From assembly GCA_900088475.1 (NCBI GenBank), contig FLMG01000641.1:1-49060 (forward strand): a stretch of DNA of 49,060 nt, in the 5' to 3' direction. A program made the position numbers and the translations under genes. Within the stretch, counting starts at the first letter, position 1. Each line of letters opens with the position of its first letter. Positions 42,163 through 47,670 of the stretch are shown piece after piece. The notes below the pieces were generated by a model. The model had not been told where the DNA came from and searched no databases. It saw only the letters and a list, made by a program, of their open reading frames with translations. The stretch comes from Hyphochytrium catenoides (lineage: Eukaryota > Protista > Hyphochytriomycota).

Positions 42163-42601
42163 CCTGTTACGGGTATAGGAGAATAGTCGACGCCACGAGT
42201 ATAAGGATTCTGAGGCTCGCATGCATCGGGAAGCAGCAGAAAATTGAGAAGCAATGGACTGAGCCCAGGCAGAGAGCGTGTGGATAGAGGAGCCAAACAC
42301 CATCTATTTATGATTGTGAATATGTAACCTAGCAGATTACTTCAGCGGCCTGCCCTCACCTTTCCCGTTGCTTTCGGCTGATACTGCCTTTGCAAGCCTG
42401 AGAGACAGAGAAAGACAGGGTTATCCTAATATCAGAAGCACAGGACTGGATGCGAAGGCTTTAATGCAGCTATAGCTCTATCTCAAGGAGAAGGCAACAT
42501 TCAACTCTCGGCTGGTGGCAGTGTTGCTCGCAGAGAGAGCCAGGAGGACTCCACTGGTCGCTTGAAAGCTTGGAATACCGGTCACAGCGGGCATAAATTG
42601 T

Positions 42602-45600
42602 CTAGCCTTGACTCTCAGCCTCTTCACGCCTCTTTAACTCGTCCTTGATGTTCTGCATGCGCTGTTTCAATTTCTCTAAGACCCCAGCTCGAGTATGAGG
42701 AGGGTAAGACCATTGCAGCTCCTCGCAATAGTGCAAAGCGCGACGGAGATCTCCTGCTTTGCGACATACTATGGCCAAGTTGTTAAGAATGTCTCTCTCT
42801 TTCTTGCACCAGTCGCGGTAGAGCGTTTCCCTTTCTTCTCTCTCAATCGATGGACGTCTCTCTCCTTCTTCATCCTCGTCCTGCATATTTGCAACGACTT
42901 CTCTTGTCTTAAGCACACAAAGTTCGTAGCCCTCAATGGCAGCCTTCAGCTCTCCTTGCGCTGTGTACACTGTGGCGAGGTTATTGAGCGCTCGTGCCTC
43001 TACAAGCTTGTTGCCTGCCAAGGAGAAGATAAAGTGAGGGAGTGAGAAAGGAGTGAAAGGAAGACACTTGACCAGAGAAGAGTTGTAACACTGTTTGTGG
43101 ACGGTTGCTTAGAGAATCATGGGCGGATGAAGGAGAGAGAGGAAGAGAAAAGGCCCAAGAGAGAGATTGTGCAATCAGGTGTTGACGCAGCAGGATGGCT
43201 ACGCACGCAGCAGGATGGCTACGTGCTTCAAGGAATGTGCAGGAACTGAGAAGGACAGGGCCGCGATGGTTCCCACCTCCTTCCCTAGCAACGCGAGTTG
43301 CCTGTTTGAAAAGCTCAGCGGCGAGCTCCAAAGCCTTATCTCCATAGAGCTGGTTCCCGCGATCCAGAAGTTCTGTCGCGGAGACTTTGTCTTCGACGAC
43401 CCCCTCTACCCTCCCTGCAGCTTCCCTCTCTATCTCCCTCTCTTCTATAGCCAATCTTTGCAAGTTCATCCCTAAAACGCTCCCATACGCCGAGAAAGGA
43501 GAAGATAAGCCAGCAGTTGAAACTCCAGTCGCGACGGCTCCATAGGCAACCGCATCTGGGTTCCCTTCTGGTCCTGGCATAGTGGAAATGCCGCCATACA
43601 CTGCAGAACCGTATGACGCGCCGGAGGTGGAATCCACAGATGAGAAAGGAGTGGAGACGGCTTGATATGTGCTTGAAAAGGTAGGTACAGACCCATAGAG
43701 AGAGGCAGGAGACGAAGTAACTATGGAGACCGAACCATACGCGGCATGCCCAATGATAGGGTTAGCTGCAGGCGTTCCTATCTGCCAGAGACCAGAAGGT
43801 AAAGGACATGGCGGTTAGAAACTAGAGCGCGATATCCCGTTCGCTAGCTGCCACGTTGCGGAACCACCACCATGGCCTTCACCAATCCCTTATGGACTCT
43901 ACTGTTACTCTGCCCTGCTCGTCTGTACCTTCTCGCCTCTTTCCCTAGTCCTCCACCTTTCATTTTTCCCTATATCTTGCAGCATATCTCACCATCGGGG
44001 TGCTCCCATAGACTCCGCCACCAGAGGTGAGGCCCTGCCCTGCGTTGAAGTTTGTAGCAAGGAGCTTCTGCGGCCAAGAGGGCCACCGCGTACAGCGAAA
44101 TATGCAAGTCAGATGTATAGCGAAGTAGCCGACTATTGAGGGAAAGACCGCACCAGAGAAGCGAAGAGTGGGACAAATCGAGTGTCAAGAAACTGATTTA
44201 CCGGCAGTGCGTGGCCTGCGGAGTTTTCTGAGGGGTTGTTACGAGCCTCTTCTCTGAAGCATTTGGAGAGGTGAGACAGAGCCTGAGGGGTGAGTAACAC
44301 CATTAGTCATGTGACCGAAGGAGCATATTGCGACGACCATAAAAGAGAACCACCTCCTTAGCCACCGGAGGTGGGAACGGTCAGCAGCATATCTAACAAA
44401 GGTCAGTGGAGGGAAGCCTGGCTCTTCTCCTTACCGGAAGGCGAAGAACATTGTCATTTCTGACAACAAAGTCTGTTATAGAGAAAAAAGATGGCTCTCC
44501 CGGCCTCAAAGGGCAAGACAGACCGTAGCCTCCCTGCACAGACAGAAAGCGCAATCTCAGCTGAGCACAAGTGAAAAGTGGCTGGGCATGGCAGTTAGAC
44601 GGTCTAGGATTCCCACGCAGGGTGAGAGCTTGAGAGCTCGGCCCATGAAGAAGCGAAGCAGATGCAAACTGTGTATGCAAGGACAGGACATGTGTGGCAA
44701 GGAGACAACACAAAGGCTTCCCTAAGAACCGCCCCCTTAGCGCCTTGGACAACACCTAGATCGATGACAATGTTTTATTAGGCTGACAGACTTACCTCAC
44801 CGATGTTGTGCAGGAGAGAGTGCTTTATGGCCCGAGCTGAGCGTGGACCGTCCACAGCTTCCACTGTCACGCGAGTCAGGACGAATTTGGAGGGCTGGCT
44901 GTCCCCATAGCGGATTAGAAATTGGCCTGCACGGGCAGTTGTGAGACATCAGAAGATAACGAGTATAGTCCAATTCACAACCGCCTCACTCATGCTCCCC
45001 TATAGGTACCAGTGAGAGTAGCGCAGAGCGAGAGAGACGGCTAAAGAGGGAGGAGAGCGATCCTTACACGGCAAAGAGACGGCTACTGTTGAAGGTATCA
45101 GAAGCGTCGAAGGGCCGTAAATAGAAGAAAAGATGTAGCTACAAGGTAAAAGGTGCGAACAGGAATATCGAGTTACCAGGTGTCTTCTCCTGCAGTATGG
45201 ATTCTGCCTCTAAGCGCGATAGGCGCCCATGGAACCACGGAGCCAGCAGCCCGTCCTGCACTAAGGCCACACTTGCCTTTCGAACGCAAGATGTCAGTCA
45301 GGCGCGTAAGACATAGGCTACCACAAAAGAACGAAAGCCTTAAGGACCTGAGCCAAGTTGAAAAAGATGGACGGGTAGGAGAAGAGGGTAACATGGGAAT
45401 GCAGAGAACGGAGCTAAGGGGGCAGGTATCGTCGATTGGACCATGTTAAGGAGTGACATCCTCTCAGGTATAAAGAGAGCCCTCCCTCCTTACCTTCTTA
45501 AGACAGACTCTGAAGGGCCCAAATCTGTCAAGAAAGAGGCCAAACTGTGGCCATAGGCATATTAGAATAGAGGCATTCTTTCTCCTTGGTTTCCGTTCAC

Positions 45601-45625
45601 GTACAACAGGCAAGAACTCTCTCTG

Positions 45626-45675
<50 letters not shown>

Positions 45676-46390
45676 GGTTGCTCTCTCGCTTCAGCATGAC
45701 CATAATTTATCTAAGTTCTTACCTGTTCTGGGGTGACTCCTTCGTTATCCTGAGCGTCCAGTGCATACTTGATGATGAGTTGAAGGTGCTCTGGCAATCG
45801 GTCAGAGGTAAAGACCCAACCGCAAGCTTTCTGAAGTCAGTAGAGGAGTTTACATAACAGAAGGGGAGCCGTCAGATGTTTAGCACGGATGGAGGTGAGC
45901 GAACATCGTTCTCAGTAGTAACCGGAGAGTTGAAGTGAGCGTCCATCAAAGTCACGCTTACGAATAACCTCTATCACTCGACGAACACCGAGAGAGAGAG
46001 AGAGCCAGATAGGTCATCATCCACCTTCTAAAGTTGGGACGGAGGGTGTGGGCTGAGAGAAGCGGAATAGGAACATGGCAAGTGAAAGAAATACTCGTGA
46101 TAGAGGATGAGGACGAGTAGCAGATGGGATGTGTAGCGAGGAAGGATACAGAGAGAGACAAAGGACAAGGAGAGGCAAAGAGTATAGCGCGCTTACCAAG
46201 AGTCCGTCAAAAAAGATGTCATAATGCACCCATTCGCCAAACTGATGGCGCTTCCTGCAGGAACCACAGAAAGACAACTAAGGGCCGACCTCTTGCATCC
46301 TGAACTAAGATTGTTATGGCGGTACCAGAACTCTCTGCCTTCGATATCTCGAATAGCCGCAACAAAGTTGTTGTTGGTTACGGTGCTCAT
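42602..46390 (-). CDS. Cbl-type EF-hand + SH2 + tyrosine-motif array + TPR protein
   Basis: Spliced translation: EGREFWKRHQFGEWV...YALDAQDNEGVTPEQFGLFLDRFGPF (EF-hand-like); PWFHGRLSRLEAESILQEKTPGQFLIRYGDSQPSKFVLT...IKHSLL (SH2); a YG[S/A/G]x-rich linker; TPRs EARALNNLATVYTAQGELKAAIEGY and ILNNLAIVCRKAGDLRRALHY. Confidence 0.85.
45628..45672. repeat. (CT)n microsatellite, intronic
   Basis: Perfect dinucleotide run. Confidence 0.95.
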
Positions 46391-47670
46391 AGCTTGTTAG
46401 AAAGGCAAAGGAACCGCATGAGGTCTCCCACAAAGCACCATCATGAGGTCTCCTACGTGCTTGTTGACTTCGGAGTGTGGCTCTCCACAGCTCTCTTATT
46501 CGTAGCTTTAGTCTTCTTCCGTCCAACCAGGCTTAGCAGACACTGTCCCCAGTCAGGATAAAGAGACCCCACAGAGACACAAGGAATTTCACAGAAGCTC
46601 TGTGGATCAAACAGCCTTTACCGAGGTTCCTCTCTTAACAGCTCGTGTCTGGCTGCGGCTCAGTCTCTTTCGTGCTGCTCCCTGAACGACGAAATAATCA
46701 TCAAAATCTCTGTTTGCGGACGACAAGAGCTTCATCAGATCAGAAAAGCTTCACAGCTATCAGAATCGTGTAGTTGTTATCGCACTGTGACGCTGTATCA
46801 CTCCAAACCCAACCAGAAAGACGCTACCGGCTCTCGTCCCTGTCCTCCTCCAGTACCTGTAATGTTTGACAACAGTTCGTACAGCTGTACATCGGTTCTC
46901 ATCAGGGCACAAACTCGGGGTATTCCGTGCTGCCATTCTTCGTCGCCCTCGTGGTGTGGAAGGCTATGCATAAAGTCTAGTATGTAGTTACTCCACTTAT
47001 TAGTTTCTCCAACTAGTAACTAAATAAATGTTCAAAGAACCTACAACCTTCCTTCACAAAATTATGATGATCTTCATCTGATCTTCAGTCTTCTCTTTAT
47101 AGTCCCTACTGTACGATAGTTCTACTAATGCTAATCTTCATATAGAGTTTGACGAATAAATAGGGAATCAGGCAAAAGGATGAAGAAAGTAGAAGACCGT
47201 ATTACCGTCCATTGACTGCCTAGGAGTCCAAGACACCAAGCCACGAACAACCTGCTGCTGCCTGCTGATGATTCACGTTGTTGTTAAAGACGCTTGAGTA
47301 ATAAAAAAGAAGAATGAACCGGACGAACATCATCGATCGGGAACTCTTCCTGGTGAAGTCTTTGATGGCTAGTTATCATCATTATTCTTCTTCTACGCCC
47401 GCCGCTTTGTCAGGTAGAGGAGGAGATTAATAAAGTTGCAGTAGCATCCTTCGTCATATTCTTGTCTTGTTCTGCTCCATAATAATAGCCTAGAAGAAGA
47501 AGTTAAGGTGAAGAAGAAGAAGTAGTCAGGAGTTGTAGCTATGGCCACAAGGAAGTAGAGCGGACGCAGAGTTCTATGTTGTTGATGAATCTTGCCTGGA
47601 TTCGCAAGGGATCATCATTGCTAACATAATAATCCTCAAAGGATCCATAATATCCTTGCTTCTTCAGTCT

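Follow-up and report, generated by a model that had tools for sequence, protein, structure and literature searches.

A predicted Cbl-type EF-hand-SH2 protein with C-terminal TPRs in Hyphochytrium catenoides, from a conserved family

We analyzed a 49,060-nucleotide stretch of the Hyphochytrium catenoides genome (contig FLMG01000641.1, here called the window), whose numbering is used for all positions, and describe one gene that is read from its minus strand. The gene is predicted to encode a 561-amino-acid protein in which an EF-hand-like domain and an SH2 domain, together forming an EF-SH2 module of the type known from Cbl, are followed by a tyrosine-rich linker and a TPR domain. It adds an intron-rich member to a conserved, so far unstudied family, and its architecture is not unique. 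We favor the view, to which we assign a probability of roughly 0.7, that the whole protein would act as a non-catalytic adaptor that reads phosphotyrosine. The gene and its parts, which account for the full 561 amino acids, are as follows.

46390-42602, minus strand: whole gene, 11 exons, a 1686-nucleotide frame of 561 codons plus stop
45271..46366, minus strand: EF-hand-like domain of Cbl_N2 type, amino acids 9-96, exons 1-5 (family hidden Markov model (HMM) and Cbl_N2 intermediates)
44435..45240, minus strand: SH2 domain, amino acids 107-204, exons 5-7 (Pfam, PDB matches and family HMM)
43473..44016, minus strand: Ser/Gly/Ala-rich linker with eight tyrosine motifs, amino acids 249-359 (motif listing and composition)
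42605..43394, minus strand: C-terminal TPR domain, amino acids 386-561 (Pfam, alignments and an AlphaFold (AF2) model)

Structural models of one EF-SH2 module from the wider family described below and of the window's own TPR domain were searched independently against 2.3 million AlphaFold DB clusters. The first model found its module at the extreme N-terminus of three proteins, and its matches also included amoebozoan proteins, Cbl proteins and kinases. The best three matches of the second model were these same three proteins, at their C-terminal ends (identity 25-32%, template modeling (TM) score 0.67-0.72, root-mean-square deviation 1.2-2.7 Å), the remaining matches being generic TPR proteins with worse scores. 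The matched segments are listed here.

A0A6G0XN59, 782 amino acids: EF-SH2 module at 4-202, TPR match at 681-781
A0A067CW72, 557 amino acids: EF-SH2 module at 10-200, TPR match at 455-555
W2W1P4, 692 amino acids: EF-SH2 module at 6-212, TPR match at 592-689

Recovery of the same three proteins by two separate searches is not a matter of chance, and the EF-SH2 module and the TPR domain therefore belong to one polypeptide whose layout is conserved. Like the window protein, A0A067CW72, W2W1P4 and A0A6G0XN59 have an N-terminal EF-SH2 module (within residues 4-212, compared with amino acids 9-211) and a C-terminal TPR domain. A0A067CW72 is also close to it in length (557 versus 561 amino acids), while two of the three have a longer middle region; all bear automatic names only. 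From their accession series we take A0A6G0XN59, A0A067CW72 and W2W1P4 to be Aphanomyces, Saprolegnia and Phytophthora proteins, respectively. The same match list contains Aste57867_23431, whose prefix is presumably an Aphanomyces stellatus locus tag, and a taxonomy lookup places that species in the Oomycota. The EF-SH2...TPR layout appears to be present in oomycete proteomes, where the modeled proteins are catalogued as unnamed or as "SH2 domain-containing". A literature search on SH2 proteins of oomycetes and on the three database proteins found no paper. A preliminary description of this DNA had proposed a single gene with an architecture not recognized as described; the single gene is borne out by the three proteins that carry both parts in one chain, and the novelty of the architecture survives in that no study of it was found and fails in that these proteins share it. 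Against the searchable literature, what this family builds on the Cbl-type EF-SH2 module is a new combination.

The relationship of the N-terminal region to Cbl was traced through intermediate sequences. Scanning metagenome contigs with a degenerate DNA pattern encoding WFHG...GxFL[IV]R gave 120 loci with uninterrupted SH2 open reading frames (ORFs), and the spliced model was then compared with these in a local search. In two of the ORFs the match extended far upstream of the SH2 domain, namely in L049 (E 3e-24, amino acids 11-151) and L025 (E 6e-14), and Pfam identified Cbl_N2 (2.6e-13) and SH2 (1.4e-26) in the former and Cbl_N2 (1.9e-11) followed by SH2 in the latter. Amino acids 1-106 of the window protein, which contain none of the scan pattern, matched on their own L025 at 148-234 (E 1.9e-5) and L049 at 144-223 (E 1.1e-4), and nothing else among the 120 loci. 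The segments of L025 and L049 that were matched by the window protein (amino acids 11-99) are exactly those that Pfam calls Cbl_N2. Starting from L049 and subsequently from an alignment, searches produced about 90 proteins, nearly all of them with both PF02761 and PF00017, and the few that carried an organism name were from Amoebozoa. An HMM was built from 39 Cbl_N2 plus SH2 modules of other organisms, with no window sequence included, and it matched the spliced protein over amino acids 9-211 as one domain, scoring 86.3 bits, whereas none of 2000 shuffles of amino acids 1-225 exceeded 3.7 bits. By Pfam, SH2 is present in all 40 of 40 family modules and Cbl_N2 in 39 of the 40.

When the family profile was compared with PDB sequences, it matched residues 131-271 of the Cbl TKB domain, that is, the EF-hand and half of the SH2 domain, at 3.6e-19. 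Among the 60 PDB matches listed, Cbl was the only protein covering the EF part, and the SH2 part was nearest to SHP2, RasGAP, PLC-gamma and SYK. The AF2 model of one family module (predicted local distance difference test (pLDDT) 94.4) was also compared with PDB structures, and its best 50 matches were all Cbl TKB domains (E of about 2e-11, TM score 0.61-0.72, some 180 aligned columns). The likeness had initially been proposed from an alignment made by eye to a string that is genuine c-Cbl TKB sequence. That alignment is weak, the ungapped score of 34 against amino acids 61-88 being equaled by 30-56 of 5000 shuffles, and the claim now stands on the family HMM and on L025 and L049, which support it strongly. 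By these profile and fold comparisons, the EF-hand-like domain is truly homologous to the EF-hand of the Cbl TKB domain, the link being transitive through L025, L049 and the family.

The second EF loop of the window protein (amino acids 66-77) has D, Q, N and Q at positions 1, 3, 5 and 12, and lacks the bidentate Glu that canonical calcium-binding EF-hands have at position 12. A calcium-sensing EF-hand is unlikely given the Gln at positions 3 and 12, and the role of the domain is probably structural, because the loop is without canonical calcium ligands. One allele carries an Asp69-to-Gly change in this loop (position 45748). Pfam scans of the single exons, pieces of 17-36 amino acids, did not detect Cbl_N2, as is expected at such lengths, and exon 3 alone had no meaningful match in the PDB. 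What it did give was a resemblance of its stretch LQLIIKYALDAQDNEGVTP (exon 3, 45723-45830) to the consensus ankyrin helix-loop of designed ankyrin proteins (E 0.028). The likeness is probably coincidental, as these residues fall on the EF-hand loop when aligned with the family. Weak Pfam matches to IBP39, the Trichomonas initiator-binding protein, were seen in 12 of the scanned family modules, and in L049 and L025 the match overlies the EF-hand-like part. A STAT-type module was also considered and rejected: neither the 60 PDB sequences that best match the family profile nor the best 50 fold matches include a STAT, and the window protein leaves no space for the N-terminal domains of one.

The SH2 domain lies exactly where it had been placed in the preliminary description, at 45240-44435, with PWFHG starting at 45240 (amino acid 107), GQFLIR straddling the junction of exons 5 and 6, and the phosphotyrosine-binding arginine, Arg133, within FLIR. 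The other key residues, Trp108, Arg115 (αA2) and His163 (βD), are present as well, Arg133 being βB5. Exon 5 alone matched positions 1-18 of the Pfam SH2 profile (E 0.0067, 16.9 bits), and the stop-free stretch around exon 6 matched positions 17-44 (E 0.0063, 17.0 bits); the two matches are adjacent and colinear, and their summed bits exceed the 21-bit Pfam cut-off. Against all PDB sequences exon 5 gave 109 matches, all to SH2 N-termini, the best being the C-terminal SH2 domain of SHP2 (2.9e-4). In one and the same SHP2 chain exon 5 corresponds to residues 110-129 and the exon 6 stretch to residues 130-153, which are contiguous, and joining the two exons therefore rebuilds a contiguous SH2 sequence. 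The family HMM spans the full domain, amino acids 107-204 of the gene product, exon 7 included. Neither exon 6 (43 amino acids) nor exon 7 had a meaningful match in the PDB when searched alone, the 43-amino-acid exon 6 fragment had none in the protein atlas, and a search for homologous proteins with the 52-amino-acid stretch of exon 5 gave no candidate. At the sequence level the SH2 domain is of canonical type, with the arginines of the predicted phosphotyrosine pocket kept.

A short acidic segment separates the linker from the TPR domain, which is built as listed below.

Amino acids 386-423: TPR1, encoded by the end of exon 10
Amino acids 427-464: TPR2
Amino acids 465-497: acidic insert
Amino acids 498-531: TPR3
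Amino acids 533-561: closing helix

In exon 11 Pfam detected TPR_1 (1.1e-9), TPR_12 (7.7e-8) and TPR_10 (2.3e-7), and 275 local alignments to TPR proteins cross the junction of exons 10 and 11. Modeled with AF2 (pLDDT 88), exon 11 consists entirely of helical hairpins and a long closing helix; the PDB matches of this model were weak and all to TPR or designed helical-repeat proteins, and the protein atlas likewise returned only generic TPR clusters of such proteins. A search of exon 11 against 1.84 billion cluster representatives found generic multi-TPR proteins only, none with the same N-terminus, and no relatives of this exon were found in metagenomes. As the preliminary description had stated, the C-terminal TPRs stand in a protein without the catalytic parts that accompany EF-SH2 modules elsewhere. 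There is no four-helix bundle (Cbl_N), since the EF domain begins as early as amino acid 9 and the ATG is closely preceded by a stop. Pfam found no RING, protein kinase or Clu domain on any exon, the SH2 domain being followed by a low-complexity middle region and then the TPR domain, and neither LRRs nor a 14-3-3 site were found in the window protein. The predicted 561-amino-acid protein is thus shown to have no recognizable catalytic domain.

The exons were found by three-frame translation of the minus strand and by reading of the DNA, and each forms part of a model in which introns begin with GT and end with AG.

46390-46326, minus strand: exon 1
46254-46197, minus strand: exon 2
45830-45723, minus strand: exon 3
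45544-45494, minus strand: exon 4
45276-45177, minus strand: exon 5
44926-44796, minus strand: exon 6
44533-44435, minus strand: exon 7
44282-44202, minus strand: exon 8
44067-43993, minus strand: exon 9
43781-43277, minus strand: exon 10
43014-42602, minus strand: exon 11, stop included

All introns conform to this GT..AG rule, and the 11 exons fuse in frame into 561 amino acids, with an in-frame stop directly upstream of the ATG. The count of about 11 in-frame exons given previously was thereby reproduced, and the gene is barely visible in the ORF list because most of its exons encode only 17-43 amino acids. Homology runs colinearly across the junctions from 1/2 to 7/8 (family HMM and domains) and across 10/11 (TPR). 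The sequencing runs in which the gene occurs are made up of DNA contigs that represent two haplotypes of a single organism, and they show no splice joints. The allelic differences seen in these runs fit the model. Of the 11 indels listed within the gene, every one is placed in a predicted intron, which has a chance probability of about 0.0015 given that exons make up 44.5% of the gene. Six of the 12 listed exonic single-nucleotide polymorphisms (SNPs) are synonymous, as compared with 24% expected for random changes, and in the domain-encoding exons there are six synonymous and two non-synonymous SNPs. Homology, the intronic position of the indels and the synonymous excess all back the predicted splicing and confirm one intact, selectively constrained single gene.

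Several further observations were made on this locus and on the window. Over 42400-46700 the two haplotypes differ by many SNPs and small indels, one of them a 20-base deletion at 43185 in intron 10. Intron 3 contains some 70 bases of (GA)n microsatellite (45616-45687), at which the run contigs break. In a run of another organism (X7, which we guess to be RNA), one contig of 263 bases is about 92% identical to 42586-42831, spanning the last 76 codons of the gene and 16 bases of 3' flank; a close relative therefore has the gene and may transcribe it. At the other end of the window, positions 1-600, and probably up to about 1000, are occupied by degenerate CCCTAACCCGCTG-type repeats, in which C strongly outweighs G (GC skew -0.59 in the first kilobase). 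These repeats look like a subtelomeric or telomere-adjacent array, and the window may begin near a chromosome end.

The disordered-looking linker between the two domains carries eight tyrosines. Seven lie in motifs of the form x-Y-G-[S/A/G]-x (Tyr 251, 271, 285, 313, 318, 336 and 355), and the eighth, Tyr295, lies in TYQA. No Pfam family was found in the linker, and neither linker nor TPR domain had a match in the 120 metagenome loci. Four of the six non-synonymous SNPs are in exon 10, which is consistent with weaker constraint on the linker. A possibility that we hold to be doubtful, though worth keeping in mind, is that this region is a FUS-like low-complexity segment with [S/G]Y[S/G] motifs that serves for self-association or condensate formation, or else a flexible spacer, and that the SH2 and TPR domains act on other proteins only. 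It would account for the 70 G, S and A residues among the 170 of amino acids 226-395, the placement of the tyrosines in YG[S/A] contexts, the failure to find any homologue of the linker and the concentration of amino acid changes in exon 10. Against it speaks the even spacing of the x-Y-G-[S/A]-V motifs in one chain with a neighboring SH2 domain, a pattern reminiscent of docking proteins that contain their own phosphosites. It is in any case compatible with a phosphotyrosine-reading adaptor and does not exclude it.

Comparison with known proteins places the EF-SH2 module among several architectures. As in Cbl, an EF-hand-like domain directly precedes the SH2 domain and would be packed on it. 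In contrast to Cbl, the window protein has no four-helix bundle, linker helix or RING, its TPR tail stands in place of the ligase part, and its SH2 domain is canonical (nearest to SHP2, SYK and RasGAP) where that of Cbl is divergent. A Cbl orthologue was ruled out by the missing four-helix bundle and RING. SHK-type dual-specificity kinases, which combine a kinase and an SH2 domain, are known from Dictyostelium. Metagenome ORFs with PK_Tyr_Ser-Thr, a weak Cbl_N2 and SH2 matched the window module at 31-44 bits; they differ from the window protein in having a kinase domain, the absence of which also rules out an SHK kinase. Seven metagenome ORFs have PK_Tyr_Ser-Thr followed by SH2 (L087, L089, L041, L073, L110, L092 and L059), and a Cbl_N2-like stretch lies between the two domains in L041, above the Pfam cut-off, and in L087, below it. 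This suggests that a Cbl-type EF-hand-like domain precedes the SH2 domain in at least some SHK-type kinases.

The proteins most closely alignable to the window EF-SH2 module are amoebozoan ones with Cbl_N2 and tandem SH2 domains (P0155, P0160 and P0168 among others; 60-73 bits, colinear over amino acids 10-210), members of which come from Balamuthia, Planoprotostelium and the MMETSP0413 transcriptome. Unlike the window protein, this family has an N-terminal helical extension of about 140 amino acids, a second SH2 domain and, in some members, a RhoGEF domain. The locus L049:140-1423:- belongs to this family, which has no name and whose layout runs from the N-terminal helical region through Cbl_N2 to two SH2 domains. 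None of the 88 Cbl_N2 plus SH2 family matches contained a TPR Pfam domain, and none resembled the window linker or TPR domain. A described SH2 protein with C-terminal TPRs, together with a Clu domain, is CldA of Dictyostelium, an organism that lacks classical tyrosine kinases; the complex that CldA forms with LrrB, an SH2-LRR adaptor, depends on tyrosine phosphorylation (PMC2906285). The window protein resembles both in joining a non-catalytic SH2 domain to a repeat-type interaction domain (TPR in CldA, LRR in LrrB). It differs from CldA, which is much larger and has its Clu domain between SH2 and TPR, in having no Clu domain. LrrB and CldA provide a precedent for non-catalytic SH2 adaptors that operate without classical tyrosine kinases.

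Under the adaptor reading that we favor, the SH2 domain, made rigid by the EF-hand-like domain as it is in Cbl, would bind phosphotyrosine peptides while the TPR domain docks a second partner, linking a tyrosine-phosphorylated protein with a ligand of the TPRs. Phosphorylation may also occur on the tyrosine array, where an SH2 domain, either the molecule's own or that of a neighbor, would recognize it; phosphorylation-dependent self-association or autoinhibition might result.

Several points weigh against this reading. RNA sequencing runs were sought for the gene and none was listed, and junctions 8/9 and 9/10, both within the low-complexity linker, have splice signals and the reading frame as their sole basis. 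The complete SH2 fold and the EF-hand are inferred through homologues. The YG-rich linker, which bears most of the non-synonymous polymorphism, could be a simple low-complexity spacer. Finally, stramenopiles to our knowledge lack classical tyrosine kinases, and the ligand could be something other than phosphotyrosine.

This last point leads to the main rival of the phosphotyrosine adaptor, a scaffold of the same build whose SH2 domain reads phosphoserine, phosphothreonine or an unphosphorylated ligand, in the manner of Spt6, as might suit a lineage without classical tyrosine kinases. Spt6 SH2 domains are reported to bind phosphoserine- and phosphothreonine-containing peptides of the RNA polymerase II linker (PMC5599234). 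We consider such a reading improbable here, since the SH2 domain is of canonical type with SHP2, SHC, SYK and RasGAP as its best PDB matches, the αA2 Arg, βB5 Arg and βD His of the phosphotyrosine pocket are all present, and Dictyostelium pairs SH2 domains of this kind with TKL kinases. That the gene model is wrong, so that the SH2 and TPR parts are separate genes or the locus is an unexpressed pseudogene, would fit the lack of a listed RNA run and the two junctions without homology support, and is very hard to credit in the face of an uninterrupted 561-codon frame with canonical splice sites throughout, indels confined to introns, a synonymous excess and three database proteins that hold both parts, at the same ends, in one chain.

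The phosphotyrosine-adaptor reading can be extended to a more speculative and rather unlikely proposal, that oomycetes and hyphochytrid-like relatives run a phosphotyrosine circuit without classical tyrosine kinases, in which this protein is both a reader, through its EF-SH2 module, and a multi-site substrate, through its YG[S/A]V array. If so, phosphorylation would bring about self-binding or head-to-tail chaining along with recruitment of a TPR client, and a STAT-like or docking-protein-like switch would have arisen outside animals and amoebae.

By one published account, nearly all functional work on non-animal SH2 signaling has been done in Dictyostelium (PMC3085826). Here a canonical SH2 domain whose predicted phosphotyrosine pocket is intact, apparently buttressed by a Cbl-type EF-hand, is found in a conserved, predicted non-catalytic scaffold in a stramenopile, and the layout recurs in proteins apparently derived from oomycetes that are pathogenic to plants and fish. 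The EF-SH2 module is shown to be an old and portable cassette, whose partners here are RING, kinase, RhoGEF or TPR domains or a second SH2 domain. The family offers an entry point to the question of whether this lineage uses phosphotyrosine reading at all, and to the role of the Cbl EF-SH2 module when it is free of a ligase or kinase.

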